NCBI RefSeq assembly: GCF_964204865.1
Contig: NC_135261.1
Span: 6,262,001 to 6,326,000 of the forward strand
Direction: 5' to 3'
From: Styela clava
Lineage: Eukaryota
Length of the DNA: 64,000 nucleotides
Shown: piece after piece, positions 23 to 63,901 of the stretch
Numbering within the stretch: the first letter of the stretch is position 1
How the letters are laid out: the number at the start of each line of letters is the position of its first letter
Made by a program: the position numbers and the translations under genes
Notes under the pieces: generated by a model
Database searches by the model: none
Seen by the model: the letters and a program-made list of their open reading frames with translations, nothing else
Told to the model about the DNA's origin: nothing

Positions 23-3000
23 GTATAACGGTCAAGGTGACACTGCTAACAGCTTTTCCAGCTTTGTTATGAGCAACGACAGTGTATTCCCCTCCATCTC
101 GTGGTGTAGCAGGAGATATAATCAGAGATCTGACTCCATCTTCTTTCACTACAACACGATGGCTGTAATCTTCGTGCATCAGGGCACCTGAAACAAACAT
201 TAAAGTTTACAATACACCCTTTATCTACTGTTTGAAAGTTACAATGTCTCTTGAAAGAACTGAAGCATAAGTCCGAGAACCTTTCGGAGTAGTGCGTATT
301 TCTATTGCAGTGGTTATGTGCTATTTATTAAACTTAGTAAAGAATATTATACCCTTATAATTTATACCATATAATATAGTTTACTAATATGAATGACTAT
401 ACGTGCCAATATTTCTTACAAAAATCTTGTTAACGGTATGCCGCATCGTACAGCAAACATGTTTTTTTAGAATGTATTGTCAAAATACATTTCAAATGCC
501 ATTTCAACAATGTTTTTTGCATAAGTCTTATAAATGTTTACGTGTATCAGGGGTATTCATTTCGCAATATCTATCTATTCTAACATATTATCTAATTTAC
601 TAACACGTGCTTGCGCATATTAAAAAGTTTAAGATAGTGACAATATTCCGCCGGGAATAAATGGACTGATTCGAATCCACATCAAATGTCATAGTGGTGC
701 AATATGTGAGTCTGTACATCATAAAATACTTAAGCAATGCTGTCATTGTCAAATAGGTTGACAGAAAGCTTTAATTTTAATGGCTCAGTAATTACATCAA
801 TGCAAGGTATCATCCCTGAGTATATAGAGCAATAACTCGCGATATACTTCATAACGATTTTTAGGTTCATTTTCTACCTTCGGAAAACACACAGACATAA
901 GCATGGAGTTCACATTTGAGCCATGATGAGTCTATTTGTGGTTGATCATCGTCAGCTGAAGTTTTATCGTTTTGAGTTCGGCCATCTTTTTGTACCGAAC
1001 TGTTGATTTGTTCTTTAATTTGATCGGTAATGTTTTCATTAACTGGTTCTGTTTCATAGCGGGGTTGGTATGTACATTGCAAGCATTGGCTATTCTTGTC
1101 TATACTATTTGTTTTTGATGGAGCGTAGCGTCCTGTTTGTAGCCCATTCATATCTCGTATATGATAGCAAACTCCCTCAAGTAGCGTTCTTTTGTCTTCT
1201 TGAGCCGTTATTTTGTCAACACGGCGCGCTTTGAGATGTTTTTCAAACGTTCTCCATTTAGACAAAGTATCAATGCCTTTGCGATTGGTTTGGTTCAAAG
1301 ATGGCGGAATTTCACTAAAGTGTGTACTAAGTTTGCCACCATTTTTAGTCCGAAAATAATTGTGTGTGTTTACATAGGGATGATATCCCAAGGATTGCTT
1401 GAATTTTGACCTGAACCGCCTATTACGTTCAGTGTCGTAGCCAGAAGTACATACAGTTACTTCAACTGGCCGTTTCACTAATTTTGTTGTGTGAATAATG
1501 ACATTTTTGACTAAACAATCCTTTTCATTCATTTTGTCCATCGAATTTGTGAATAATTCGAAACATATCCATTGTGAGTGATGTGAGTACCCATGTAGAC
1601 TTCTAGCCCATCGTTAATAAATTGCTAAAGGAATCACAGTGATGGCAATTCTGAACTAACTAACTAATAGTAATACTTAAGACAAACTTAACTCTAACAC
1701 AAAAACATTAGTTAATAATACCAAAGAATGGAACGAATCACAAATTGCCATTTTTTCGTTTAATTCAGTTGTGCTCATAAAAAAAATGTCTGCCCAGTCT
1801 TTAACCAGTGTTTGCTTGGTTTTACAAATTCAATTCTCAATGAATAAACTTGCTAAACTAAGATCAAAGTTTTATTGCGCGGTTATAGTTATATTGATGT
1901 AGCCATATGCTCGGGACTCGGAATATTGGAATTGTTTGTGAAAATATAATCACAGTACTAATATAATGATCTATCTAAAATAGGACGTGAGTTGTATAGC
2001 ACGGCTTTAGTTCAAGCATCTTATCCAGACATTCTATGATGGTTTATGATTGAGTTCCCCATTTTATGATCGCTGGAGTACGAGCTCTTATTGCATTCAC
2101 CAAATTTGAGGTAAAGAACACTAATTCATAACAAAACCAAGCTTGAAATAAGCCAAAACGAACTATAGATATGTGGCAACGGTATTTAAGGATTAGAATC
2201 AGAAAGAATGTTTCGCGATCGAATATATAATCCGTCATCTAAAATAGGACATGGCGTACCACTCAAAAACCACTTAGCATTGCCTTATCGCCTTCCACAA
2301 ATATTTGTCATTTCGAACAAATGCTTCAGCATTTCCGTAATGTATTTGATTTTATAGGACAGGAATGGTACAATTACACTCAGATCGACAATCTACTAAA
2401 TCCTAATTAACGATTCCCAAATAAAACCAATAAATTGGAAATTAAATATCCCTGCACCCCTATCATGTCCTCAGACTTGCACAAATCCACATTAGTTTAT
2501 AATAGTTCAGTTAAGACACAGACCAGCGTTTTTTATATTTGACGTTACTGTAAGTCAAACAATTTAATTTATTACAAATAACGACACGGCAACATTTATT
2601 CTAGTACAATCCAGGTGAGTGGGCAATTGCGTATTGGAAGGGTGAGGGCCAATTTTCGAAAGCAATACAATATATAGTACTACAAATTCCACAAATCAAC
2701 TTGTATAACCATGGTTCCCAACTGGTGGCCCATGGCTCCCCAAGGGGACAACAGTGCAGTTGTAGAGAGCCACAATGCTAGGCGCAAATCTGATTTTACT
2801 TTTCACTTTACAGGAAAACTCCCTGTTTTTTCTAGTTTCATAGCTTGACAAGGTTATTTCACAGATTGTTTTCACTTTGTTGATCATGAATTGTTTGAAC
2901 ATAATGGGATCTAGAATCCTCCAATAATAATAACACTTTACATTACTACTAGGATAATAACATGGGACCATGGGTGTAAAAGCCTGCAGAATCCACAAAG

Positions 3001-47600: not shown

Positions 47601-50600
47601 ACCGCATCTGTAGGTTCTGGTGACGGGTTAGGAGGCTTCTAATGAGTAGGTCTTTGTCTTCTGTAGAGTCTTGTCTGTCAATGCTCCGTGGAGTATTATT
47701 AACGCTTGCTAGAGGAGTTCGTGAGGGTGGTGTACGGAGTCCCAATATTTCAGAAAGCTGGCAGAAAATATGTATTGTATTGGTCATAATTGAATTCTTG
47801 AGTTCTTAAATGTATAATTGTGGTTGGACCGAATAATAATTTTCGATCAATATTTCACAGGATGTTGGTCATTTAAATATTTGAACGCCATCTTGTGGCG
47901 AAAAATGAACAACCCCTAACGAAAAAAATGCAACACTCGTACTACCGTTTAGATTTTAAATAAACATAACAAAATTGATACGAATTGAAAATACAGTTCA
48001 CAGATGTATAAATGTGGTTGGATCGAATAATAATTTTCAATCAATTTTACAGGAGGTTAGCCATTTAATTTAATTATTTGAACGCCATGTTGTGGCGAAA
48101 AATAAACAACCCTTTCAAAAGAAAAACGCAACACTCGTACTACCGTTTAGATTTAAAATGAGCATAACGGAATTGAAACGAATTGGAAATAAAGTTCTTG
48201 AATATATAAATGTGGTTGGACTGAATAACTATTTTCAATCAATTTTTTACAGGATGTTAGCCATTTAATTTATTCATTTGAACGCTATCTTGTGGCGAAA
48301 AGTAAACAATCCTTTTATATAAAAAAAATGCAACACTCGTACTACCATTCAGCTTTTAAACCCGCTCTTTACATGGAAAGGTTACTAATACGTGATGCAG
48401 GTGATTCAATAACAAAAGTTTATGATGTCTCTTTTTTGCAAATGACTTATTACACATTATAACTCATTATACTTAACGACGTTTACCTTGACCACTTTTT
48501 CTATTTCCCCATTAATAGACTGCAGTAAATTGAGTCTATCCCCAAGATCCACGATTAGTTTTTGTGTTGAATCTACATCATCCCCGAGCCTCACTTCATC
48601 ATTTATGAACACCGCCTGCTCTAGGTTATCCATTGCTTTCATTAGCTGAAAAATAATTCAATGTTTAGAAAGTTTATGGGTACTCAAACAATATTCAATC
48701 TCAGCTGTCGTAGATTAAATTAGCAAATCACAAATCGATTTAGAAAAGTATTGAGATGATATAACCTTTCCATAGTATGAGGTAATTACAATACACAAGA
48801 CAAACACGCTGGACGGAAATCCGGTTCAGTTGTCAAAACTTCAAATGAGACACAAGAGCGCCCCAATCTCACCTTGTGGCATAGAATATAAGTGAGTGAA
48901 AAAATGACAATAAGATATTTCTGATCGTTCTTCAACTTAGTAATATTACCAAAATATATGTGAAAAAACACGATAAAATACTTTCAAATAGGGAATTAAT
49001 CGTGGTACGGTTGTGATAAGTTATGTCGATGACATACACAAGAGAGCATATATCACATGTACATCAGTATTCAGAGTTGACTACGAAAGTTGTTGGTAAC
49101 TCTGCTGCTCGTTAGAAACTGAGTTAATTGTGTAATTGTAATAAAGCTTTTATTAAATAGTTAGTAACTGGGTTTCAATAACATCACTTAGTCGAAGTGA
49201 CGTTGAAGTTTCGTAATCTTAGTGGTAGTTCAATAGAGTAACGAGAACAGTAGATGTTATTATACATACCCTATCTGCAGTATTTTCCACATTTTTCCAT
49301 TGTACATTCACATCCTTCCCTACATTATTTCTATATTGCCAAGTCAGCCACAGATCTAGTAGGTCGTCCTTTTCCTGTTTGAGTTGTTTTGTAATATCTT
49401 GTACGCGGCTCACCGATTCCTCAGTTTCGAGGTTATCATCTAGTGACAGAAAATAATAATGATGTCAAAACTTTTATCTGATTAGAAAATTGAAGATACC
49501 CGTGATTTTTCTCAGCAGGCCACCCAGAAAATGTTAGAAGTAGTCACTTATTATTTTTTAAATATTTCGGGGATTTTACAATCAACGTACTATGTTATTG
49601 AAACAGCTTTGCACCACAAGTCCCATGTCTAGACATGAGTTCTATCTACACTTATTATGAGATTATTTTTATATTTGGCGATACTTGATACTTGCAAATT
49701 ATAGCGGTATATGAAACTCTTTGACTCAGCTTCAGCATTGCAGTTGAAGTTATAAACGCAATGTTTGTAGCATAAATTGTGCAAAATTAATTTGTACGAT
49801 ATTCGCGACACGATAGGAATGAGAGCATGGATAAAATATGGTTGGGAATTTAACCATCACCTTCGATTCCTTCCTTCAGCTTTCCAATCAAACTCTGCGA
49901 CGTGTCAATAGCATTGAGGCATTTTTCTTGGACTGCCTGTAGTTCTTCTTGTAAAGAGATTCGTTCTTGGTCAGACATCTGATTCAACTTTTCGTGCTGA
50001 CTCGGTGCAAGAACTGTCCGAAGCCGTGACATTGTTTCCGAGGTCTGCCAATGGTTTAGCATATATTGAATATTATATTAGTGCAGTCTGAATGAATTGC
50101 TCGCTATTCATGACTTGTTTTCATATCGCAAACGATCGCCATATTTCTATCCATAACCCTTAATCATGCATGACACACCGAAATTGACTGTCTGGTATTA
50201 ACAAATTCTGAGTGTAAAAAGGGCATCAACAGACCATGTTTGAATGTTGCACTCGAATCTCAGCCGACACGCGCGCTTATCCGATTAGCCTGCAATTTCT
50301 ACACTCGTTATGTGAGTTATATACCTTGTAAGTGACGGATGCCATGATGCATTAAGTATTTTGTTGCACATAGAAATATAAATACCAAAAGTTGATCGCT
50401 AAATGCTTGTTACACATTATGCTGCTTACACATTATTACAGGGCTTAGGGCCCAAGATTATTTCATAAAGGGGTGATTATATGGGTGAATAGTTCACATG
50501 CTTTACCGGCGAGCGATGCGGCGTAAAGGCAAAACTTAACAATGCATTTAATTCATATTTTGCAACATATCTTTATATTTGTTCATGTATGCATAATGCG

Positions 50601-53600
50601 CAATACACAAATTTGTCTAACATTTCATGCGCACCATTTCTGATAGAATTACGTCACATAACTTCCACAATTTATCACAAACGTGAACAAATAGAAAATT
50701 CATGTGTCAAGCAATTTATAGCAAATATTGTATGGCTTACCTGATCGGCATTCGATAGACAATCCACAAAACTCTCCGCAAGATTTGCTCTTGAGTTTAC
50801 TATTTTGTTTATTCTTGTCATATCGACTTTGAGTTCTTCTGCTCTATCTCTAACTAAGGTTGGTCTCGCTACTCCAGCTTCTAATAGCACGTTTGCTGTT
50901 TCGACTAACGATTCTAGGTCGCAGTTTTTCTTCTGCAAAAGTTAAAATGAAGGAATTGAAAAACAACAAAGTTTAGTGAGTGACGAATGACGGGGGAGTA
51001 TTGGAGCAAAACGCAAAAATCTAAACACACTTCATTCTCTGCGTCAACGTTATCGCTAATACCAGCTCAATCATATTTGCGGGGTGACCCAGGTAATTTA
51101 CAAAAAAGAATTGGATTGCGGACTGGAACTAATCTTCGCTAAAATACGAATTGAAATATCTGCTGTTCAAATGGCAATACGCGAACTTCTGTGTTTTATA
51201 AAAGACCTTGTAAATGCATTGCTTACCTTGCGACCTTGTTTCTATGTATTTCCGATAAATTTAAGCAATTTTAACATGTTACGTCTCGGCGTGACATATT
51301 GATTAATGTTTAGTTTAGCATTCGCAGACTTATACACGTGTACCGTCTTCCATCATTTCGCAAATCATAATTAATCCGATTTGCAACACAAGATCTTTCT
51401 TGTATTATTAACGAGCATTTCAGGTCGTCGTTATCGGTTACTCATGTAAATGTTAACGCAGTTTTTCGACACGCGGTCCAAGCTTGACTAAACTTATTGC
51501 GGTTCTATCGAAATCACTCATTGTATACAGCATTACGAGAGTTTAAAATACTTCATAATGGACGATAAAACTTTCTGCTTCGATTGTGCTTGTGAAGTCA
51601 TTCGATTTTACTAGGTACCGCAGCACCAAGCTTCTTTATTAAAGATGCACCTTTTCTTGCATATACAAAAATATGTCAATTCAATTCTATCTGCTGTCTT
51701 ACTCTCGCAAGTATCAAAGTGGTTCAGGCTGACAAAGCCCTTGAGGTTATGCGCTTGTGTTATTACGACTTCAAAACGCAAAATATGACAATTACTAGTT
51801 GAACGTACAAATTAGGAGTTGATCGCGCGGAAAGGTGTGTTATTTCAACACACTAATTGTCTGTTGGCATACAGAATTTAGTTGTAAGTCTTATACGTCT
51901 TCCGCTTTGAAAGGAATTCGTGAAATTGTAATAACATTGGTTAGCCTTTTAATATTTGTTATTTTCTCGGTAAATAAGCAATCCATCAGCGGCGAACGAA
52001 ATAATTAATTTGATATTCAATTGACCAATTTTATTGGCCTTGTTAAAGCATCAACAATAAACTACATACATAATATACCTTCAAAGTGGGATCTATTTTG
52101 ACAGTGATATGATTTGTATGACCCACGCGTTTCATTTATCACCTCATTCTTTTAACGTTTTCAGATAAGAAAAGTTCGTTCGAAATATAATTTAACTGTA
52201 CTATACTAGTCCTTGACTATATCACAAGTAAAATTGCGTATCTGGTACCGGAAGTTTGTAACATAGATTGATGTCTGCGCGAATGCAGAATATTTGCGCA
52301 AGGTAAATAGGAAAACGACCTTTTGACCGAATACACTGCTACGATGAACATGAAATGTCAAGTTTTTGGGATTCGAGAACTTTGCAACAATATCCAAACG
52401 TTTGGATATATGTCTGGTGGTTTTACGTGCTACATTTTAAAGCAAACTTACGGTCATGTGAGATGAATTTGAAATACCTCCTTTTGAACAAATTTATTTA
52501 TATATTGTACGTCGAGAATAACTCGTGAATTCCGATAGCTTAATGACGAACGTAAACACTGTTTGACATAAAATGTACCCAAATGTGGAACTTTCTCACT
52601 TACCTTTATATCATTAGCAAGACTCTTGTGCCAATCCAGAAATTGAGTAGCTTCGTCTTGCGTATCACCCAATGTCGTGTTAGTACCGAGCATGTCACAT
52701 GCTTGTCGTGTCATCCAATCTGTTAACTACATAAAAACAAATAAAGGTGCAATCAGAATTGATTAGGCAAAGGTTGTTCATAACATTCTACTGCTGACTC
52801 AGTTTATAAAGTTATAGGAGCTGGTTCGCCATTATTGTTGATTACTCCACGCGTGATCGCCTGTATGAAATCCTATACTGGATAAGTTTGTGCAAATAGA
52901 ATACCGGAAATGTTAATTTAACGTAACCGCTGGTTCGTTTTAGGTGTGAGCATGTACATGCTTATCTAATGTTGGATATTGATTGCTGAAGTTGGGGTCA
53001 GTAGTCTCTGCAGTGATTTCCTTTACCCCCCTACAGGGGGCGACCTTCACTTATTCTATCACATGCATCAGCTAACTTTAATAAATTATATAGCCATATT
53101 TCAAACCGAAAAAATTCCGGTATCCCAAAATACCGTTTGGAAAGGCCTTGTACACATTTCTTGGAAATGAATCTTGAAGTCTTTGACGTGATGTCAAGTA
53201 CAATACCTAGTCCAGATCACAGCCGTTCCCCGTCCCATATTCTTCTCAAAGCCGATCGTGTGGCAAATATTGCTTCAAAAGCCAATATAGACCGGGCTTG
53301 TCTATTCACATGAGTGACACGAGATGGCGACTGATTGGAAAGGCTCTGTATATCAGTTTATTATCAGCTATTGATGCCCTACTTAAAAATGAATCTTAGA
53401 GTCTTTGACGTGGTGTCAGGTACATTCCCTAGACCAGAATACATCATTCCCCGCTTCCAAAAACTACACTATGCTGTACTTATTCTATCATTATGTATGA
53501 TAGAATCTGAAATGTTATCGATATCATGCCATGTTCGGATCATTGAAATTAAAAAGTGATATTACCTCTTGGCAACTTGCGAAGAACAGAGCAGCCATCT

Positions 53601-56600
53601 CATTAATTCTCATTGCTTCCTGTCTATATTTAATGACTGTTTTCTCCAGATTTGATTTCTGTTCATCTAATTGCCTTATTGAATTTTCGACTCCGACAGC
53701 TCCAGGGTCAATTCGATCTTCCTCCTCTTCGTAACTAACAATATGTGTGACTCAATAATGTACATTGTAGCTGAACCAGTTTTTGCCTTTAGCTTGTTTT
53801 CAATTTTATTTTATTATAAAGTGAATGGTAGAGTTCAAATTTACGTTTGACACTTTGTCATTCAAGTTCTAATTTTGAGATATGAGTTGATTGATCAAGT
53901 TGCCAATAATAATGTATCGTATGATAGTGTATCTTTGTGTGTTGCCGGATTAAGATTTTGCCACTTGCTTGTTTTAAGTGCCTTCATATAGTAAGAATGA
54001 TAGTGTTACAATAAACATTTGACCATTTGACTTTGTTATTCTGATTTCATGACAAGACATGAATTTGATAAATGAAGTTGTCAATGATACAACGTATTCT
54101 CGTGTATAATTTAGCTGAATTCAATTTTGGTTTGCCTGTTTTATATCTAATTTCAATGATAGAGTTCCAATATATAATCGAATCTCCCAGTTTTAACATA
54201 CAGTGAAATCCACTACTTTTGTGCTATGCTAAATTTTACAGAGTAGGTTCGACAATGTAATAAAATATTTACGCTCTCTCCAAAATATCCCTTGCCAGAT
54301 CTTCAGCAGGTTTGTATGACAATGAAATAGCTTCCATAAATTTTGAGCACTGGGTTTCAAGTTCATCCAGGTCTGTTGAAAATACCATATTATCTAAATT
54401 CTTTTGTATTTCATCCAGTGATTTCTTTGCCTGTAATATAGGAAACCGTTTTATATAATATTTGAATGTATATATATCATTCAACACTGCTGCAAGCTTT
54501 TGAACTTATTTGCAGTTAATTGAAAAATCATGCTATATGATCTTATTGAACACTCATAAACAAGAATCATCCATTTAAGCCACAAATATTCAGAACTTTC
54601 CGGAAAAGCTAAACTACACAAAGAATATGAAAATTTGAGCTATAATTTGAAATACTGGCTGCGTTTGAATGATGCAATTATTGAAAAGCTGAATTCTATA
54701 ATGCCCATTTAAACATTTCGTTCTATTGATCGGAAATCACAAATTATCGTTTGTCGTACCTCGGAAGCAACTCGGAAAAAACTTTCAGATTGTGCAAGAT
54801 TGTCTCTTCTTTCGTCAATGAGTCTCATAAAACTTTCTCCAGCATTATCCAGTTCGTGAGCTTTCTGGGCCACTGGTTCTGTACCGATTGCTCCTAAGCT
54901 TTCGATGGCTCGTAGAAGAAGTCCTTTGACTCTCTCAAGACGATTCTGTTAACGTGAAAATAGTGTTCATTACCAATGTTTCGTACCAATGGCATTCGAC
55001 CTAAACCGAAAGAGTTACCTGAGCTTGTACTTTTATTTCTTCAACGTGACACTGCATTGCTTCAGCCCGTTCAAGATTTTCTCCGAGATCGTTTGTGTTA
55101 AAATCTCTCTTCTTTGCTTCTTCGAACCATTCAATCACCTTCAATTTATCATAAAGCAGGAAAGTAGTTCTTATAGCAATTGTTTGATGAATTTAGAGAT
55201 TGTAGAATTATGCACATGTTAGATAGCAAATCGGGTCAAAAATTATTTGAATTATCTACCGCGTAATTTCCAAATCATTGAATAGTGATTATGACAGTGG
55301 TTCTTAAAGTATGGGTCGCGACCCAAACATGGGTCGCGGAAGGTTTAAAAATGGGTCGCGACAAGGTCGTCAATGCAAGGGCAATCTAAGAGGAGAAGGA
55401 CGAATTTTCAGCTTTCCCAATGTTTCAATTTAGCTTCTAAACTCTGGTATTTAAAAATAATGAAATAAAAATTTTCATTCACGGAAAGAACTGTCTTGAG
55501 CACATTGTTACATCACAATTCTGATATGCCAGTCACGTGTATTATTTTTATGGTATCGGTAACCATGCACGTCGCTTGTCGTTGTGTTGACCGCATGGAA
55601 TGTCGTCTTAGTGGATTAAAATAACCAAAAATGGGTGTCTTTTTGGTAATGAAAATTGTAATAGACGACGCAATGAAAAAGCTCGCTTCTCGACATTAGA
55701 TTATTCAATATCTAGAGAAAATGTGACTTCATCTCGAGGCACCATTTACCGCGAACGAAGCAGTGCGTGCACATGTGACGAGTAAAAAGTTGTATATTGC
55801 GAGAGATACCGAAGGCCAGCTAGGATGTCGTGTTTGCGACGGACAGCGGACGCCTTTTCTGCTACAATTCGCGACAAGGCACTTGTGCGAGCGAGGATAT
55901 TTGGCACTGACGGTTATCAAAACTAAGCTCGCAATCGCTTTCGATACCCGTGACAACTTGCGTATTGCGTTAAGTAAAATAGAGCTGTGTATTGAAGATA
56001 TAATGAAAAAGGAAATTTCAGTTTCATCAATCTCACTGAGTCAATGGACTGTTTCTAATAAATAGTTGTCTGTATTTGAGTCAGACTGTACTAACATTAA
56101 AAACACATTTTGCGTTTTTTAGGATTGGGTCGCGAGTATTCATAAAACTCAGATTTGGGTCGCGCTCGAAAAAGTTTAAGAACCACTGGATTATGATATA
56201 ACAACCATGTGATTTATGAGGTCGTCCAATCCAAAATGTATATATAAAATGTATTCTCTAAGTGCATAATCACGTAAATTGCATTTTTACATCATATCAA
56301 ATCGTCAAGATAAGATAGTTTTTAAAGTAAGAAATGTCGATGAATTACAATCATAAGAAATCATTTAAATTCAACTTTAAACCGTTGGGTTAATCTATTT
56401 GTTTACTGACCTCTTTCACTTCCGATTCCCAGTGGCAGGTTTTGAGTGATTTTTCAAGTTGTTCCTTTCTTCTTTCATAACCGTGTTCAACTTGTCTTCG
56501 CCTGTCAATCAACGATTCAAGTGCGCACTCGATCGCAGTACAAGCACTTCCGTAGCTGGCCTAGAAATAAAGTAATACTTGTGAAAATAAAATAACTACA

Positions 56601-59600
56601 ATCTCATTTTCTGAGAGGTTTTCAAGATTTATGGTTATAACGACGCCATTTTAAAATTGTTCAAACTATAAGTATGTCTCTCCCCCGGAAGGAAACAATT
56701 AGAAACGTCTTTATCTTGTCTAATAATATTTGCTGAAAACTAAAACAATTATTGGAGAAGAGGGAGGCAAACAGGTTTAAAAATACGCACCTTTTTTAGA
56801 ACTGGTATTCCAATACAAGAAATTAGACCATTTTTAAATCAATAAGTTTTTGATCTCACTTGGAAAAACTTATTTTACAGTGATGTACTGGCAAAAAATA
56901 TTGGTGAGTGTTTTCAAAGAGGTTCGTTTATGCAATGATTCTTAAACTTTTATTATACATTTTAACACGAGCTGGAAATTGTGTACATTTGTTTAATAAT
57001 AGTTCATGTATAATTGAATAGTAGACCTTCTGCCCATCGGGTTGAGATTTTCGCCAGTTCTTCAAAATTTCCAGCAAGTTTTGTCCATGTGTTAAACATT
57101 GCATTGATGCTTCAAGCATGTTTTTTCTCATATCTTTATGCGTTTCCAACAAACTCAGCGCAGATGATTTGTCTCCTGGTAAATCTTTCCACTTAAGATA
57201 TTGCTCTAAATATGTCAGCTGCTTGTCAAACTGGAAAATAAAGGAAATCTTCATGTTTGACGTTTCAATTAACATAGAGCTAGATAATTCTGATATGATG
57301 GGACATATTCGATATTTTAACTTTACCTCTTCAGCGGCTCCGTAAAATCCAATGGACTTCCCGAGTAAATGTTGCCTCCTATTTAAATGTGACTTCAATT
57401 CCTGCCATAGATCTGCCAGAGACTGTGCCATAGCTTCGTACAAATTTCGACTCGAAATTGGTCGATCAAACGCATCCTCGTCGCAATATGATTTGGCTTG
57501 TTCTAGTAAAGCTGAAACCTGGTTTTCTTTTGTCTGTAATTCATATATATACCTTTATCAATTACCGTTTATTGGTTACGATAAAATATATTTGAGGTGC
57601 AAAATATTTTCTATCAACACTATGTTAAAACATTCACATGGATTTTGTGGTTGAGGTTACTTTTAACTTGCAATGCTATGTTAATGTCGGCTACAAAAAT
57701 CGAAAAATATCTCCTATTATTCGGCGTTAATTGCGTGCTGGGCTGCACAATTTTTACAGGATGTACGACATTAATAAATCCCCAAAAAATGCGACGAGTA
57801 GAGGATTAGTCTAATTCAACGGTGTGCAACGCGAATGTACTTATGAAGTTAATCAACTGTGATTGAAATTAGGCAAGTATTGAGACTCGTAACCTCGTTA
57901 GTCAATTGTAATATAAATATAGGAAGGCCCGATGTTTTGTTTTTTTTCATTTATTTAAGAGATACCTTTATATAACCACAGCACAACGAAATTTATTCAT
58001 TTTTTATTGGAAATAAAAATTAAAAACAAATTCATTCGAAATCTAGACACTTGTTTATTAAGAATCATACACTAGTTAAGTATATATGCCTTGGAAAGTA
58101 AAAAATATATTCTATTTGCCAACGCAAACCTATATAAATTGAAAAAGAAGACGTTTCCCTAAAATGTAAGAGGGTGTTATTTTCTACAAACCTGCATTGC
58201 ATTTAATGTTAAGACATGTTTCTCGCGGAGTTCAATTGCTTCTTTCAGATTTTTTCCGATGTCAAATGTATTCGGTCCACACTCAACTAGCTTGATTCTA
58301 ATCCAATCGGTTGCCTGGTGAAAAATATATTTCATAAGAGACTTATAAGGTTTTCTTTCATATATCTGAATTAAAAATATCTTATAAATGATTGAAAGCC
58401 CAGTGATACATATAAAAGCATTTTGAGACGAGCTTACGATGAATTAAGATTTAAATGTGAATTCAGCAAGAACATTTTTGATTCATTTCAAGTCATAACT
58501 TTGTAATAGATATTCACATGTCGTTGAAATGAGTGATGCTAATTTATTCATTTGGAGTGTGGGCTTCTCCAAGCTTCAAATTACAAATCTCAGTCTTGCT
58601 TCTGGTTTGGATTTGATTCGTGATTTAAAACACCAGTTATTGTGGGCAATGTTACTTTTACTTTAAAACCCTATTTTTGGGCATAGTTATCCGTCTATGG
58701 TTTATGTATTGCAAGTTGCCTGACTATTCGAAGCCGCTCTAGCAAAGTGACTATTTTCAAACTTGAGTTAAGACATGGTAGTAATGCATAGCTTCTTTTT
58801 ATGAAGCTAATTTTTCTCATTAATTGACCGCATACTTTAAACTCTAACCTTTTATTCGAAATTTGTTTTATTATAAACATATTCTCATAAACTTCAGCTC
58901 AAATGTAGAATTGAAAACATGAAAGGTGTTTAGATATTCAGTGTTTATTTTTATTTGTCAGTTATAGCATGATCAAACGACACAGTCCATGGAATAACAT
59001 TTAGTAAACAGAGCACAATTCTCTATTGTTCAGAAAATACTTAAATCATTCACTCAGTTGTGATTTGGCGTTGTATGCCGTAATGCGTCACAGATTAGGA
59101 AAATATAAAGCGGTAAATAACGGTTTCAGCGCATGTAGGTAGCATACTGAAGTGTTCAATACAATGTATGTATGTTTCCTGTGGCTGTTCAAATGACTTG
59201 CTTTTTGCGGGGAACTTCAATGCTTTATTTTTGATGTGCGTGACGATTGAGATTTGTTGATCCGCAGCGGAAACGTATCCTTATCAGGCTTCGAATGTTT
59301 CCAAATACAGTCGATAGATAAAATAAATTTGTGAAAACCCCCTTCATATAGTTGTTATTATGAGACGATTCGGCTGACTTCACATGTTTGTCAAAAAAAT
59401 TCATATTTTGCATTCACAAAATAGCGTTCTAATAGCGTCATATAGGCATGTTTACCGTCAGAACAAATGAAAGCTATTTGTATTAAAAATAACAAAAATA
59501 ATAAGATACTTGTTTTCCGCAAGTTATTCATTGTTATACTCTTGAGGGAATTCGGTGGTCATACTCGACTCAAGGTACGTGAAAAATGATCCCATGGCGA

Positions 59601-62600
59601 AGAGTTACAATCCATCTACCATTTAAATGTACTTAATCAGGTAATATGCGTTGTTTACATCATATTTTACATCATTTTATTGCATAAAAACATGGCTAAT
59701 AAGTAATATTTTTCAAATACTTTTAGTGACTAGATAGAGACTATATAATGAACATCGCGAATAATTATATAGCTTTAAATACCGCGGGTGTTGCTAAAAG
59801 TCGTAAAAAGCAACAATAGTACTGCATGATGCCGTTTAAGTCAATCACGCGAAACTTCGTGAAATTGTGATTGACTTACTGCGCCACCAAGCTGAGTTTC
59901 AACTTTCAAAGTCGAATTGCAGAGGTTGCTACTGCTTAGTTAATTGTTGCATTTCTGTTGTAGCTTCATTAGAAGGGAATTGAGCAAAAATACCTCTTTC
60001 ATCCCTTCCATGAATGTTGATCCGGGCGATAAAACGTTTCTTCTTCTTTCTACTTTACTCCATTTGTTGTGCAATGACGAACGGAGAAAATCAAGATGTT
60101 TCATCTTTGATTGAATCGCAGAGGCAATTGGATCACTTCTATAAAACAAAAGTAGGTTAATAATTGAAATTATGACTATATAGACAGTACTCAGATTTTA
60201 TAAGAAATACGAATAAAATAGGATATATGTATATATATTATATACCCATATCAATAATCTTAGACAGTCATGATGAGACCGATTAAATTATTTTATTTTT
60301 ATATTTTTTTAATCTTATTGCAGTAACTTGACCCAATAATTATTGTGATCTCTATCTTTGCAGTCATATTTTGGTTTGTCTGAAAAAGTCAGACTGTGAT
60401 ACGGACCCGCAGAAGACGACCAGCATGAAGAAGCTGTTCATTATACAATATTCTAGTACCTTTAGTACTATGATATTATTTCTGGGTTTACTAACCTCTT
60501 GCCGCCTCCAACGTCTTTCAATATTGAATTCCCCATTTTCATCACGTGACTCATTTCGTCGTTGAGTGACATGTGTGCTTCACGAAGTGGCGTTATCCGC
60601 GACATGGTCGGAGACCCAAGTTGACCATTCGATGCCTTGGATGATGGATCTGTTCTAGCAGATTGAAATGCTAGATCTAAATCAGAGCCAAGTCGTGATG
60701 CTCGTTTGATAATCTGCAGAGAACATAACAGATTGCTGATAATGTTAGAATTATAGGTTTCTTAGTTTATTCACTTGCGATTAACTAGATAAAAATCAGA
60801 TGCAACATCAGCGAAATTAACCAAAATTTTTTTTAAATCAAATTTAATTGAAAAGGGGAAATTATGTTCAAAAGGATTGCTGGACTCTTGCCGTCGTAGG
60901 ATGGTTCATGTAACCATTGGTTCAACCATCAAGTTCTTGCATCTGATACAAATAACTGCTTAACTCATCCCATACCCGACATGGACTGCTAGCGGCTCTT
61001 CCCAAGATTAATATAAAAATCCTACCATTTCTTAATAACAAAGGTACTGCTTACTTTCTCACTGTTGTTATGAAACAAATGGGCCACCGCAAGTCGACTA
61101 TTCCTTTCTTCCCAAACTTGCATAAATTGATTCCACGCTTTTTCCAAAGTAGGCAGAACTGCACCATTAGCCCCCACAAGTTGACTACTGTATATGCAAA
61201 CAAACAAGTAGTTAGCTGTGTTCTGGGTTAATCTATAATACATGAGGGAATGCTCAAATATATGGAAACAACATTAATAGCGTCACATAATGACGCAATT
61301 TTGCAAAGTGGGTTGAACGTCACAAGAGCCCAGAAAATAATGGCAGAAATTCATATGAAAATACTTCCATCATTTAATTACTACATTTATTTAGAATATG
61401 TTTGAACAAGTAAGATAGGCAGACAATTTTGTTCAACAACAAACACACTTCAACAGATTTGATTGATATGAACTATTTTAATGACATGGCCGGATCTTGT
61501 ATATGTCGCGTATAAAAATATCAAGCCCACCAACTATTCGTTCGTTTCAATGAATTCGAAGGACTCTTAGGTGCGCCAGGTGACAAATCCAATGTTCTTC
61601 TAAGAACTGATATACAGGATAATTTTTTCTTCCCATTGTCATACGCTCGCTTTGCAGTGTTCTAAAACAGTATTTTTCATAAGCAGTTAACGTTTTTATA
61701 TACGAAGTGCAACCACTGTAGCTAATTTTCAGTTGTGATTTAGTTGCTCACTCGTAATCTCGCATTAAAAGTACACAAGAAATCAATCCATAGGTTTTTT
61801 TCAGAACTTTTACCATGATTATACAGCCATAATCTCTCACTAACAATTAGTTGGGGATTAAACCAATTTAAGCTTTAAAATATGGGGCTGAGATTCAAAA
61901 TAAGTGAATATTTAAACGCATTATTCTTTCACCTTTATCTCTTCGTGTTGCAAGCGAAGAATCTCAGTTTCTTTTGCGTTTACTCCGAGTGCGAAATGTT
62001 TGTGCCGAATATTTTCGGACATTTCACACATCCATTCAATTGTCTAAATAAGAATAATAAGCATTGAAAAAATGTCTATTTATACCAAAATTATAATTGT
62101 CCTTTTGTATATATAAATTGAGGTTGTTTTTACACCTCAGAGCTGTTTGGTATAACTGCTTCGCTATATAAAGTACATCGTGATTAGGTTTGTGATCCGT
62201 AGTTTCATATATGTGACACGCACAGTCATTTTGCAATCTGGGACAATTGACTCTTAACTTATAACGTTTTGAGTCAGAATTGAAAGTTAAACAGAATTCA
62301 TGAGAGAACTTATATCGAACGCAACATCTTCCGAACAACACCAAGAAAAATGGCAGCATGGTTTAGTGAAAGTATTTGTATTTAGGAAAGACAGAGTTCT
62401 TTTATTACCATAAACAGGTACACGATTATGAGAACCTGTGATGAACATAAAGTTAAAAAATGAACACTCAAAATTAAAATACTGCAAAAATTCGTATATT
62501 ATGTTGTGTTATAATATATATATGTTTCTGAATAGCCCTCACTCACTTTTTTTCAAACTTAAATAGAATTTTAGTGAATTGTTCGGATTCAATTTGAAAA

Positions 62601-63901
62601 ATTTATATACCTGTGAAGCATCGTGTTGTGAGTCTTTTAATTCAAGAACATGCTGGAATTGATTCTTATGAAACTCACAAGTATCTTCGCTCTGTTGAAT
62701 ACTTTCTCTCAATTTGTTCACGCTCCAATGAACATATCTGATTTCTCTCGAATAGTCGACATTGATTGCTGACCTATATCAATTGTTATGATAATAAATG
62801 AGAGATGTGGCAATATAAAGGAACGATTTATTCTAGGAAATATACGGGAATCTATGTAGGAATGTCACGTATGTTATTTACCTTCTAGATATGTATGGAT
62901 TGTCTTGTTCCCTTTTCATTAGGTCGGAAAACATTCGGGCTGATATGAAAAGTTTTTGCTGTTGTCGTTTAGTTTCCTGAATTAAAAAACGATTAAAATA
63001 TTTTCAAAGTATAAAATTATTGAATATCACCTACTACCATAAACAATTATATTCCTTTATTGAAAATGAGTCAAGGTTACTATATGCAATCGCATTATTC
63101 CATGTAATCAATTGAACTTATATAAATCTTATACCTGCATTTGTTGTTGCAGTTGATCTAGTAGCGAATGTATTCCATCTGTGGTGTCCAGTAAACTAGC
63201 TTCGTTAGTGCAAACTGTTGCAAGATTGCAGAGGCATTTGGAGACCTATTCAAATTTCAATTAAACAAAAGTAAGACCGATTAGTGTAATTTACATTCAT
63301 TTACTACGGAGTAGCGGTAACTGTAGTGGTTGGGTCTTGTCAGTTCAATATTATCAGCTCTTTTGGTACATTGTCGCATGTTTATCATATCACTCAGAAA
63401 GGTACTACAAAGTAATGTATACACATTGTACCTCATCTCGTGTTCTATAGAACGTTAAAGATCTCTCCAATAAATTTTTTCTTCTGATTATTTTTCCGTT
63501 AAATATTTTGCATGTTTCATCAACAGTTGCCAGGTTGTACTTCAGTTCACTCATCATCTAAAAAATGAATCAGATAATATATCATTACTTTTAACAATAT
63601 GACAAATCCTCTGCATAGGCATGTTTTTTTTTATGCTTTCAGTTGTTCAGACTGTTATTTCGTATTGTTATAGAAATATTGAGTAGCATTATTACAAAAT
63701 TAAAATACATATTTTGTTAGTTATCTCTTTCCCGGGCAAGCTCATATTAGTTTGTGAAATTAAAAATCTGTTTTATCAAAATTCACTCACAATTCGAATC
63801 GATTCTTTACGTTCCTGTTCGTAATTCGATTGGTGTCTCTCCATTGTTCGACGAAGTTTGTCGAATTGCAGTTTTAAGGTTGACATCGTAGTGAAGATAC
63901 T
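23..63901 (-). CDS. Giant multi-exon spectrin-repeat + Ig protein gene (SESTD1-like / CCDC141-like / titin N-terminus), partial at both ends; 59 phase-compatible exons, about 3,900 aa in the window
   Basis: Each exon was checked by hand for an AG acceptor, GT donor and phase continuity. The total of 11,722 nt is 3907 codons + 1 nt, ending in phase 1 at position 23. Exon lists are given in the module features. Whether all modules share one mRNA is not proven from DNA alone. Confidence 0.7.
878..1541 (-). CDS. Intronic ORF of about 221 codons; candidate alternative first coding exon spliced onto the second half of a titin Ig domain, or a nested gene
   Basis: 224-aa ORF in AT-rich intron. An in-frame TAA lies about 25 codons upstream of the ATG. 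The donor GAAG|GTAGAA at 878/877 is phase 1, matching the acceptor at 187. No recognisable domain. Confidence 0.5.
10311..10497. repeat. Recent 92-bp tandem duplication spanning a splice acceptor
   Basis: TCAGATGACGAGCTT[C/A]TCCACGACCCCTATCGAAAAAGTAA... starts at 10311 and at 10403. Confidence 0.9.
13225..13441. mobile_element. Palindromic MITE, subtype A (internal part in opposite orientation)
   Basis: GGTACTCCCGAAGTATGTGAACCAAGATGG ... CTTGGTTCACAT. A short derivative lies at 34838-34948 and a fragment at about 35185-35290. Confidence 0.75.
15375..15599 (-). CDS. Symmetric (phase 0/0) exon encoding two tandem IQ motifs
   Basis: AATKIQASFKGYKTRK and SATKIQAAYRGFRTRH fit IQxxxRGxxxR; 225-nt exon. 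Confidence 0.85.
16083..16197 (-). repeat. Coding 30-bp (10-aa) repeat x4
   Basis: TEIVTAISEQ SEFVTAISEK SESVAAISEQ SESVAARAEK inside exon 15995-16321. Confidence 0.8.
20919..21122. mobile_element. Tc1/mariner-like MITE
   Basis: GGGTGTCCATAAA / TTTATGGACACCCTG followed by TA. Same family at 29525-29730, with partial copies at about 9810-9965 (reverse) and 17430-17532. Confidence 0.75.
21268..23626 (-). CDS. TTN: Tandem I-set Ig domains equivalent to titin Z1-Z2
   Basis: PPRFTLPLKS..EGGTLRFEAVVTGFPIPAVTW..DAGIFTCHAINGAG..AEFVVKTKTVAPLFKQHL..TGLPAPRVKWYREG..EAYEEDTGRFTVTAANNAGKATSTAML, encoded by 4 exons. Confidence 0.9.
23030..23445. repeat. Tandem duplication, about 200-bp unit x2
   Basis: GTGCAGTAG.TTGCA..CATGGAATTGAAAAATGACAAAATAT..CATACTTCAAATA occurs twice. 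Confidence 0.85.
25151..25560 (-). promoter_or_regulatory. Candidate titin-specific internal promoter and non-coding first exon
   Basis: Strong donor AAG|GTAAGG at 25151/25150, with stops close upstream. It lies 1.5 kb upstream of the ATG-bearing Z1 exon. The flank is locally GC/CpG-richer, with TGACG and CANNTG motifs. Confidence 0.4.
25880..26330. repeat. Degenerate tandem repeat, about 145-bp unit x3
   Basis: TTTAC.GG.TT.A.A.TTA.G..ATAT..TATTTGATATA recurs at about 25900, 26041 and 26187. Confidence 0.7.
28300..28510. mobile_element. TTAGGG-containing element, subtype B
   Basis: Closely similar to 30367-30582; flanks GGATTT / GGGTTT. Confidence 0.75.
28945..29259. mobile_element. Degenerate hAT-type MITE; related fragments at about 7340-7510 and 19125-19290
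   Basis: Shares GCCAGTCTAGGTGGGCAA..GGCCC..CCAAAAACCTT with the 7450-7510 copy, and GCGGGCC subterminal motifs with the 19125-19290 copy. Confidence 0.55.
29525..29730. mobile_element. Tc1/mariner-like MITE (second copy)
   Basis: TA-GGGTGTCCATGAAGTC ... GACTTTATGGACACC; the internal sequence matches the 20919-21122 copy. Confidence 0.7.
29875..30119. mobile_element. Palindromic TTAGGG-containing MITE, subtype A
   Basis: Long inverted ends TACTCCCGAAGTATGTGAACCA..ACCGGAACGTAGTATGTGTACCAGGTTAGGGTTAGG / reverse complement. Confidence 0.8.
30163..35463 (-). CDS. Ser/Pro/Arg-rich disordered linker exons joining the spectrin block to titin Z1
   Basis: Exons 35348-35463, 34530-34774, 33897-34067, 31645-32798 (within the 425-aa ORF, repeated RSPSP), 30905-31054 and 30163-30269. 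The chain starts in phase 0 and ends in phase 2, matching the acceptor at 23657. Confidence 0.75.
30367..30582. mobile_element. TTAGGG-containing element, subtype B
   Basis: Shares the left arm with subtype A but has a different right arm (GAATATACCCC..ATAGGTTTCAGTCCC..TTCTGGAGCGCC); flanked by CATTTT direct repeats. Confidence 0.75.
33305..33610. mobile_element. hAT-type MITE
   Basis: Termini CAGTGGTT / AACCACTG; perfect 8-bp TSD ATTTAGAA. Confidence 0.85.
37564..37979. mobile_element. hAT-type MITE
   Basis: TIR CAGGGTGGTCCAA / TTGGACCACCCTG, perfect 8-bp TSD ATTTAGAC, subterminal GCGGGCC repeats. Confidence 0.9.
41505..41543 (-). CDS. Candidate alternative terminal exon EDRNSSTAFIQV*
   Basis: Acceptor ttttctaatag|GAA is in phase 0 with the donor at 42008. 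TAG stop follows GTG. Downstream is T-rich UTR-like sequence with AATAAA (minus strand) at 41145-41150. Confidence 0.45.
   Translation of the reverse strand, partial: EDRNSSTAFIQV
42008..43970 (-). CDS. Gln-rich coiled coil and Pro/Ser/Thr-rich tail following the CCDC141-like block
   Basis: Exons 43072-43970 (within ORF 43067-43996, contains PPPPPPPVP), 42516-42692 and 42008-42240; phases 2/1, 1/1, 1/0. Confidence 0.8.
44405..58314 (-). CDS. CCDC141: CCDC141-like spectrin/coiled-coil module
   Basis: Exons 58192-58314, 57327-57533, 57027-57230, 56411-56560, 55019-55138, 54760-54945, 54273-54430, 53566-53734, 52604-52726, 50741-50932, 49855-50044, 49270-49439, 48487-48645, 47542-47757, 46955-47173, 46651-46857, 46268-46396, 45639-45818, 45199-45266, 44405-44599. 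Peptides WIRIKLVECGPNTFDIG, YEAMAQSLADLW, LIDRRRQVE, CHWESEVKEVIEWF and DDLLDLWLTWQ match remembered human CCDC141 (WVQLQLAESQPNLLEIG, YDAMAETLGEAW, LQDRRRQLD, CQWDQQENQVTCWF, EELSLLRLAWQ). Confidence 0.85.
44821..45140 (-). mobile_element. tRNA-derived SINE relic interrupted by a MITE
   Basis: Minus strand has an A-box-like TAGCTTAGGTGG and a B-box GGTTCGAACC with tRNA-like spacing; no full cloverleaf. Confidence 0.45.
44847..45075. mobile_element. Palindromic TTAGGG-containing MITE, subtype A, inserted in a SINE
   Basis: Same family as 29875-30119; flanked by direct repeat CCATAA (44841-44846, 45076-45081). Confidence 0.8.
47282..47496. mobile_element. TTAGGG-containing element, subtype B
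   Basis: Closely similar to 30367-30582; flanks GAATTT / CAATTT. A right-arm fragment is also at about 14378-14478. Confidence 0.75.
47790..48360. repeat. Tandem repeat, about 195-bp unit x3
   Basis: TGTGGTTGGA.CGAATAA..TTTGAACGCCAT.TTGTGGCGAAAA..GCAACACTCGTACTACC recurs at about 47819, 48013 and 48211. Confidence 0.9.
53166..53460. repeat. Degenerate direct duplication, about 220-bp spacing
   Basis: AATGAATCTT..GTCTTTGACGTG.TGTCA.GTACA..CCTAG.CCAGA occurs twice. Confidence 0.6.
55295..56188 (+). mobile_element. Non-autonomous hAT (Charlie/Buster-type) DNA transposon with a transposase C-terminal remnant
   Basis: TIRs CAGTGGTTCTTAAA / TTTAAGAACCACTG and a perfect 8-bp TSD GATTATGA (55287-55294, 56189-56196). 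ORF 55763-56065 contains LLQFATRHLCERGYLALTVIKTK..DNLRIALS, resembling the hAT dimerisation motif. Confidence 0.9.
59994..63901 (-). CDS. SESTD1: SESTD1-like spectrin-repeat module (C-terminal half; the SEC14 part would lie upstream of the window)
   Basis: Exons 63791-63901, 63432-63557, 63135-63245, 62882-62976, 62611-62773, 61933-62043, 61531-61661, 61055-61187, 60496-60713, 59994-60138. Peptides TIEWMCEMSENIRHKHFALGVNAKETEIL, AYDNGKK, LPTLEKAWNQFMQVWEERNSRLAVAHLFHNNSEK and SDPIASAIQSKMKHLDFLR are colinear with remembered human SESTD1 (AVEWLSELL..LGDDAQETKVL, TYDYGRQ, LPRLNRVWKQF..EERVHRLEMAIAFHSNAEK, SDMASTAENIRDRMKL). Confidence 0.75.

Follow-up and report, generated by a model that had tools for sequence, protein, structure and literature searches.

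Organization of the SESTD1-CCDC141-titin cluster in the tunicate Styela clava: a probable SESTD1-CCDC141 fusion gene beside a separate titin gene

Results

Genes and modules of the locus

Here we report the analysis of a 64,000-nucleotide stretch of the Styela clava genome (contig C16, NC_135261.1, C16:6,262,001-6,326,000; hereafter the window, whose own numbering is used below), which carries the predicted tunicate counterparts of three genes, SESTD1, CCDC141 and titin (TTN). The assembly comprises 377 Mb in 380 contigs, the GC content of the window is ~35%, and every relevant exon lies on the (-) strand. An earlier note, made from the sequence alone, had described these modules as a single spliceable gene held together by three joins, 59994->58314 (join 1), 42008->35463 (join 2) and 30163->23657 (join 3). 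The identity of the modules, their adjacency and their common orientation are confirmed by colinear matches to Ciona, CCDC141 and titin Z1Z2 proteins, and splice sites in phases 0, 0 and 2 were found at the three joins as described. As detailed below, the cluster is probably organized as at least two transcription units, a SESTD1-CCDC141 fusion gene and a separate titin gene, with a serine/proline-rich (S/P-rich) block between them. The features of the window, in the order of transcription, are the following.

59994..63901, (-) strand: SESTD1-like module, its last ~10 coding exons, defined by colinear tblastn to the Ciona protein P0013 and by the exon chain
63901-63791, 63557-63425, 62773-62611, 62043-61933, 61187-61055, 60713-60496 and 60138-59994, (-) strand: SESTD1-like exons among these ~10
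58315..59993, (-) strand: intron of join 1, GT..AG, phase 0
41987..58314, (-) strand: CCDC141-like module, ~25 spectrin-type exons from 58314-58192 to 44588-44405, then the next three exons
43970-43072, (-) strand: coiled-coil/proline-rich exon following the spectrin-type exons
42692-42516, (-) strand: exon of the CCDC141-like module
42240-41990, (-) strand: last exon of the CCDC141-like module, with the stop codon at 41989-41987
30159..35463, (-) strand: S/P-rich module, an exon chain affiliated with no known kin
35463-35357, 34774-34530, 34067-33897, 32798-31645, 31054-30905 and 30269-30163, (-) strand: S/P-rich exons of this chain
28663..29499, no strand assigned: transcribed stretch covered by contigs, inside the claimed intron of join 3
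25151..25275, (-) strand: titin exon 1, non-coding, with stops in all three frames and the donor TATAAG|GTAAGG
23527..23657, (-) strand: titin exon 2, encoding the first half of Ig domain Z1 behind the start codon (23626-23624)
23..22824, (-) strand: further titin 5' exons (Ig, unique-sequence and IQ exons), with PDB and Pfam matches
22824-22624, (-) strand: titin exon, second half of Z1
22157-22033 and 21430-21268, (-) strand: titin exons of Z2
20682-15944, (-) strand: unique-sequence titin exons
15599-15375, (-) strand: IQ-motif titin exon with two IQ calmodulin-binding motifs (Pfam IQ, E 9e-14)
down to 187-23, (-) strand: more titin Ig exons with I-set Pfam matches

The main comparisons were made with the Ciona intestinalis protein XP_018669094.2 (P0013; LOC100180275, 1707 aa, an 'uncharacterized protein' of RefSeq), an older Ciona model from UniParc (P0003), a Clavelina lepadiformis protein (P0017) and a titin-like protein of Saccoglossus (P0009). 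Exon-level identities amount to 30-65% for the Ciona and 29-62% for the Clavelina proteins.

The SESTD1-like module

The window exons from 63901 to 59994 are colinear in tblastn with residues 554-984 and beyond of the Ciona protein XP_018669094.2, within an overall colinear range of 7-984. The earlier note had proposed to look for SEC14 exons upstream of the window; these were found at the window-equivalent positions 68.1-69.6 kb, with the first coding exon at ~75.0 kb, and the upstream exons (locus L003, with the first coding exon in locus L006) are colinear with residues 7-234 of the same protein. Their assignment to SEC14 is indirect: the exons at L003 4101-5609 match residues 56-234 with E-values from 5e-4 to 6e-11, a range that includes the CRAL_TRIO_2 domain of the Ciona protein (residues 89-200, 30.7 bits at a cut-off of 23). 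Exon by exon, Pfam matches stayed below threshold for the SEC14, SESTD1 and CCDC141 exons, each of which is too short; six-frame genome scans with PF00650, PF13716 and PF24915 gave no signal at the locus, and the protein Atlas returned nothing usable for the SEC14 exon.

The colinear Ciona protein also carries the Spectrin_SESTD1 domain (residues 662-767), so that spectrin repeats follow SEC14 with no DH or kinase domain, as in SESTD1. The domain PF24915 taken alone is unspecific, since a fish protein whose domain set is kalirin/TRIO-like is listed with it as well. Since no RhoGEF exon was found within 1 Mb of the locus (the nearest RhoGEF match on C16 is ~1 Mb off), the first module is called SESTD1-like rather than TRIO/KALRN-like. 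A length filter kept the 696-aa SESTD1 proteins outside all three protein searches, and the module presumably resembles vertebrate and human SESTD1. Judged from its domains and colinearity, the segment 63901-59994 is the predicted tunicate counterpart of SESTD1.

Upstream of the first SESTD1-like exon, on the (-) strand at L006 5454-9870 (C16:6,341,454-6,345,870), lie leucine-rich-repeat-type open reading frames (ORFs; ..LHLDENKLQEIKLGTFSKLKNLEVL..) together with a 334-aa ORF with a hydrophobic segment, which look like the next gene.

The CCDC141-like module

The exons of the middle module, from 58314 to ~44.4 kb, are colinear with residues 1051-1607 of the Ciona protein and residues 145-1002 of Clavelina P0017; the Ciona protein ends within the repeat region, at a window equivalent of ~50.7 kb. 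A search with Ciona residues 640-1300, which span the boundary of the two modules, retrieved ~65 vertebrate CCDC141 proteins (E 7e-15 to 1e-4), nearly all of the named matches, each covering ~38% of the query; four fish proteins whose domain set is kalirin/TRIO-like scored in the same range. Direct matches of vertebrate CCDC141 to the window are weak, in the colinear order 58305, 57539, 56548 and 49434. The main named relatives of the module are thus vertebrate CCDC141 (CAMDI) proteins, whose gene lies between SESTD1 and TTN on the same strand, and we regard the module, on these matches, as the probable tunicate counterpart of CCDC141.

The vertebrate protein has its own initiator Met, a conserved N-terminal peptide and one or two C-terminal Ig domains, none of which was found for the middle module. 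The own-Met peptide TT.S..A.QAG..IVIA is shared by the vertebrate and Saccoglossus CCDC141-type proteins; it has no significant match within 58.0-60.3 kb and is likewise undetected in Ciona, and the residues preceding the conserved W exon show no similarity to it (p 0.7-0.97). Searches for the C-terminal Ig (I-set) domain with the queries P0009, P0019, P0024 and P0085 gave no Ig-type match between 58.3 and 23.7 kb, the first one being the titin Z1 exon 22824-22624.

Two further observations concern this peptide. In Clavelina P0017, the segment 'TTTSSATEIAG' (residues 118-129), which directly precedes the conserved W exon, resembles it at a borderline p of 0.054. Within the intron of join 1, the N-terminal peptides of the Saccoglossus and paddlefish CCDC141 proteins match one stop-ridden stretch at 58987-59082 on the (-) strand; with E ~1 the match is not significant, and the stretch, a decayed exon or a chance resemblance, was rejected as a relic of the CCDC141 first exon.

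The junction between the SESTD1-like and CCDC141-like modules

The two sites of join 1 are both good, with the donor GAG|GTATTT after 59994 and the acceptor TTTTTCACCAG|G before 58314, in phase 0. Unspliced, the frame meets a stop 17 codons beyond 59994, at 59942-59940, and the intron contains AATAAA/ATTAAA motifs at 59681, 59229 and 58955; the chain finder described below found no convincing coding exon in this 1.7-kb interval. The Ciona protein XP_018669094.2 carries the identical junction (..VNE|STDWIRMKLVECGP..) between its SESTD1-type and CCDC141-type parts, continues after Spectrin_SESTD1 in colinearity with the window at 58320-50738, and is matched in this respect by the older model P0003, which also spans the junction. 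Exon 60138-59994 can be aligned over its whole length with Ciona residues 990-1053, down to the same last residue (score 63, against a maximum of 38 in 200 shuffles). The AlphaFold model of P0003 (mean pLDDT 71, from an alignment of 10 sequences) predicts a helix at residues 433-450 that crosses the junction 439|440 with pLDDT 72-82 and opens a three-helix repeat behind a disordered linker.

Among tunicates, a hemichordate and vertebrates, the conservation of exon 58314-58192 begins with the very first codon, and the first in-frame ATG of the exon is codon 40, preceded by out-of-frame ATGs. Translation must therefore enter this exon from upstream. The SESTD1-like and CCDC141-like modules most likely form one reading frame, as in the Ciona RefSeq model.

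The 5' end of titin

The exons from 23657 downward are predicted, from their domain matches, to encode titin. The Z1 exon (22822-22625) has the titin Z1Z2 structures 2A38 and 1YA5 as its top PDB matches (chain residues 32-98, E ~5e-16 for native Z1Z2), and the IQ exon at 15375-15599 sits between the unique-sequence exons and the following Ig exons. The latter carry on below the window, and 40-plus Fn3 matches lie on the (-) strand at C16:6,072,927-6,165,712, 100-190 kb beyond it.

For the 5' end, contigs of four runs (X1-X4; X1, X2 and X4 come from two studies) were placed on the segment 23500-29499. They are read as RNA because they contain a spliced joint and have zero depth over most of this segment; the runs X1-X9 contain 10-22% of the sampled words of 22.6-32.6 kb, a pattern resembling exon-only coverage. 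In X1, X2 and X4, position 23657 is joined to 25151 across a GT..AG intron of 1493 bases on the (-) strand; the X1 contig with this joint is 1679 nt long, with 125 nt on the side of exon 1. Exon 1 contains a TAA in the titin frame at 25179-25177, 20 codons before the ATG. Titin here thus has a non-coding exon 1 and its ATG in exon 2. In vertebrate TTN, too, exon 1 is non-coding and the ATG stands in exon 2 directly before Z1, and the human titin Met lies at about the same place relative to Z1.

The X1 contig stops at 25275 without overhang and no AG stands in front of it, which is consistent with a titin transcription start at this position; no contig depth was seen at 25.3-27.9 kb in X1-X3. 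Even with an upstream exon feeding the possible acceptor 25285, the titin frame would be closed. Join 3 itself has the donor CGG|GTAAAC after 30163 and the acceptor TTGTTTCACAG|A before 23657 in phase 2 (..TIHTG-PKESHSSSEI-M-AGIEF). It was not seen in the spliced contigs of X1-X4 (23500-29499): where the earlier note had proposed 30163->23657, the contigs of X1, X2 and X4 show 23657<->25151 instead. The note's statement that the sequence in front of the titin ATG is open holds for just 10 codons of exon 2, ahead of which the contigs place the exon with the in-frame TAA.

Several side observations relate to titin. Exon 1 ends in ..ATTCTATAAG|GT (25151-25160), which looks like the 3' end of the spliced leader of Ciona; the exact Ciona leader pattern is absent from the genome, so that the likeness is probably coincidental. 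On the (-) strand at 867-1541, a 224-aa ATG ORF with no Pfam match lies inside an 8.7-kb intron (8913->187) that splits a titin Ig domain; it was drawn in as a spurious exon by the chain finder at low penalty. A genome-wide Fn3 scan revealed a second dense cluster at C1:11,248,000-11,327,000 on the (-) strand, which is read as a second giant gene of the titin/twitchin/obscurin type.

The S/P-rich block

The S/P-rich exons gave no Pfam or Atlas match and no similarity to the CCDC141 proteins compared. They are real coding sequence: the end of the 1.15-kb exon is conserved, at 70% identity, in P0016, a 289-aa product of a short public-run Logan contig, which is probably from another species since its identity is as low as 60-70%. 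The chain closes at 30163, where a TAA overlaps the donor (GGG TAA), with the stop at 30161.

Join 2 would link this block to the CCDC141-like module through the donor AAG|GTACAT after 42008, which lacks G at +5 and has a stop six codons past it, and the acceptor TATTCCCAG|G before 35463, in phase 0. Because the acceptor is strong, some upstream exon must feed 35463; the chain finder connected it with the 42008 side solely via spurious mini-exons, and join 2 is unsupported. The Clavelina protein ends ~45 residues past a PPPKPPRKK motif and the window frame ends at 41989, ~39 residues past PPSPPPRR, apparently at a similar position of the protein; the two tails have no detectable similarity.

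Downstream of the block, contigs of all four runs lie at 28663-29006 and further contigs at 29096-29499, with an AATAAA at 28661. We infer that 28663-29499 is a repeat-interrupted 3' untranslated region of the S/P-rich unit, assuming its strand and its continuity to 30163. The same area contains a dispersed high-copy repeat (~28300-28500 and 28900-29300) that encodes ..RTRNRTKIRKIGIK..WPN.NLVH..-like peptides, similar ORF pieces of which occur near 44.9, 47.3, 30.0 and 13.3 kb and at ~6.2 kb of L003. RNA-like contigs reach a depth in the ten-thousands at 28300-28499, pointing to a repeat-derived or small RNA of very high abundance.

Joinability of the exon chain

The claim of a frame-open chain was examined with a frame-aware dynamic programming search for GT-AG exons (the chain finder), trained on homology-supported codons. 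A stop-free chain from 63901 to 23 was recovered, with 53-63 exons in the window and with direct use of 59994->58314 and 30163->23657, so that a chain like the 59-exon one of the earlier note exists. Its joinability is no more than that expected by chance. On the opposite strand, the same finder threads stop-free chains over 56-71 kb (13-133 exons), and on block-shuffled sequence the two lower penalties give chains over 64-71 kb (19-137 exons) and the highest penalty gives chains over 20-43 kb (3-4 exons). Of the GT x AG pairs at the three boundaries, 14/36, 4/20 and 16/49 are in frame, about one-third as expected, and a stop follows each of the three proposed donors within 0-17 codons. Given these null chains and in-frame pairs, an open spliceable frame across the boundaries is no evidence of a single gene. 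The opposite-strand and shuffled chains have far lower coding scores than the real one; what departs from chance is what the modules encode rather than the joins.

Discussion

Proposed organization and alternatives

In the organization that we favour on balance, the first unit would be a SESTD1-CCDC141 fusion gene, with its first coding exon ~11 kb upstream of the window and the SEC14 exons next, in which exon 60138-59994 would be spliced in phase 0 onto the first CCDC141-type exon at 58314. Its product would be one protein, a SEC14 lipid-binding head on a long spectrin-repeat rod, most likely ending at the stop 41989. The S/P-rich block (35463-30161) would either form a gene of its own or extend this unit alternatively at its 3' end. 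Titin would be transcribed from its own start near 25275, through exon 1 and the 1.49-kb intron, and translated from the ATG at 23626. The open frame over all three modules would reflect how often GT/AG pairs happen to be in frame, whatever the boundary.

That a single gene regularly yields a SEC14-spectrin-(S/P linker)-titin product through all three joins is very improbable. Usable GT and AG sites do exist in matching phase at each join, two of them picked by the chain finder; the Saccoglossus protein P0009 (6732 aa) starts with ~1150 aa of CCDC141-type repeats ahead of an Ig array, by which a CCDC141-titin link may persist, or be mis-predicted, in hemichordates; and transcripts spanning CCDC141-TTN and zormin-sls are cited in the literature (PMC12198301, PMC12657953). 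Against this stand the contigs that join 23657 to an exon with stops in every frame, the transcribed sequence within the supposed intron of join 3, the stop shortly after every donor at a chance level of joinability, and the Clavelina CCDC141-like model, which ends past a poly-proline motif resembling that before 41989, albeit with a dissimilar tail. The one-gene claim of the earlier note is most likely right for SESTD1-CCDC141, by the Ciona junction, is unsupported for titin, by the exon 25275-25151, and lacks support at 42008->35463. A minor isoform that skips titin exon 1 and uses joins 1, 2 and 3, giving an occasional SEC14-spectrin-titin protein, has only a slim chance; a rare product of join 3 is compatible with the contig data. 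The evidence on titin is weakened by several points: contigs prove presence and never absence, the stretch covered by them ends at 29499, short of the donor 30163, and the reading of X1-X4 as RNA is a guess, with the spliced GT..AG joint and the empty introns speaking for it.

The fusion of the first two modules has counter-evidence of its own. The use of join 1 in Styela clava is inferred from the comparison with Ciona, the RNA contigs covering the titin side only; the Ciona protein is an automatic RefSeq model; Clavelina P0017 begins separately, with 144 unrelated residues and no SEC14 part, and may retain a CCDC141 start of its own, in which case the fusion would be specific to a lineage within the tunicates; and an in-frame ATG seven codons upstream of the 58314 acceptor makes a separate start inside the join 1 intron possible. 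All modules would then be separate genes, with SESTD1 ending 17 codons past 59994 ahead of poly(A) motifs, the CCDC141-like gene starting within the 1.7-kb interval, and the Ciona fusion being an artefact; a pseudoscorpion CCDC141-like model, which begins nine residues before the conserved W, would fit such a start. Tunicates use spliced-leader trans-splicing, and a CCDC141-like start after trans-splicing is conceivable. We nevertheless consider separate genes unlikely: two Ciona model versions span the junction, behind an exon that ends at the homologous residue; the ATG near 58314 is embedded in a good acceptor context (polypyrimidine/CAG); if a leader were attached at 58314, 39 conserved codons would go untranslated because out-of-frame ATGs stand ahead; and the predicted helix A requires residues of the upstream exon. 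Less easily dismissed, though still doubtful, is a fusion gene that continues through join 2 and the S/P-rich exons to 30161 (~3300 aa), with titin separate. The strong acceptor 35463 needs an upstream exon, 42008 is a usable phase-0 donor, the block is coding and conserved in P0016, and vertebrate CCDC141 also has a long disordered region behind its repeats; yet the block resembles none of the CCDC141 proteins compared, the Clavelina model stops after the proline-rich part, the donor is without G at +5, and the finder made the link only via spurious mini-exons.

Relation to the ancestral connectitin gene

The general idea of one ancestral SEC14-spectrin-titin gene, advanced in the earlier note, has been proposed in the literature and is not new: SESTD1, CCDC141 and TTN were derived in 2025 from 'connectitin', a SEC14-spectrin-Ig/kinase gene paralogous to TRIO/KALRN (Hanashima et al. 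2025, J Mol Evol; PMC12198301). Connectitin occurs as one undivided gene in cnidarians and placozoans and is split in three in bilaterians, with adjacency kept from human to Drosophila (CG15822-zormin-sls); Ciona was used in that paper for synteny only (PMC12198301). The account was repeated in PMC12657953, according to which titin and nesprin-1 are both bound by CCDC141 in the mouse heart. Our literature searches on connectitin and on SESTD1 with Ciona found no report of a tunicate SESTD1-CCDC141 fusion.

Styela clava has the same set of three modules as connectitin (PMC12198301), but two of them appear fused and titin is separate: instead of one ORF running from SEC14-spectrin into the Ig array, the titin ATG exon is joined to the stop-filled exon 25275-25151. 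The RhoGEF domain of cnidarian connectitin, part of a RhoGEF/PH/SH3 block located mid-gene, has no match in Styela clava within 1 Mb of the locus. Ciona LOC100180275 is organized like the Styela clava gene, with SEC14, SESTD1-type repeats, the same junction and CCDC141-type repeats (36-65% identity exon by exon). Other long SEC14-spectrin-Ig loci, KALRN/TRIO with internal promoters, sls/zormin and CCDC141-TTN, have nested or spanning transcripts (PMC12198301, PMC12657953). Unlike at sls/zormin and CCDC141-TTN, no transcript spanning into titin was seen here, and the stretch contains no DH or kinase exons.

The description of the locus as the unsplit ancestral chordate gene is unsupported. Because the vertebrate and hemichordate CCDC141 proteins share an own-Met peptide that is undetected here, the tunicate SESTD1-CCDC141 fusion may well be secondary by parsimony. 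What is probably new, and modest, is an apparent tunicate fusion gene in which the Ig domains and the own start of CCDC141 are missing, beside a titin gene with a non-coding exon 1. In this titin, an IQ-motif exon and unique sequence take the place of the Z-repeats of vertebrate TTN, the 5' layout of which likewise consists of a non-coding exon 1, an ATG in exon 2 and then Z1-Z2.

If true, one frame shared by SESTD1 and CCDC141 would make an exception among bilaterians to the three-way split, and a minor isoform spanning into titin, if it exists, would be the first connectitin protein in a bilaterian. A titin with its own promoter, non-coding exon 1 and start codon would be present in a tunicate, as in vertebrates. 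Tunicates are the sister group of vertebrates, and the fusion would either have been retained as an intermediate or have formed secondarily by re-fusion; in both cases it would provide a natural test for the CCDC141 rod and the SEC14 lipid-binding head acting as one protein.

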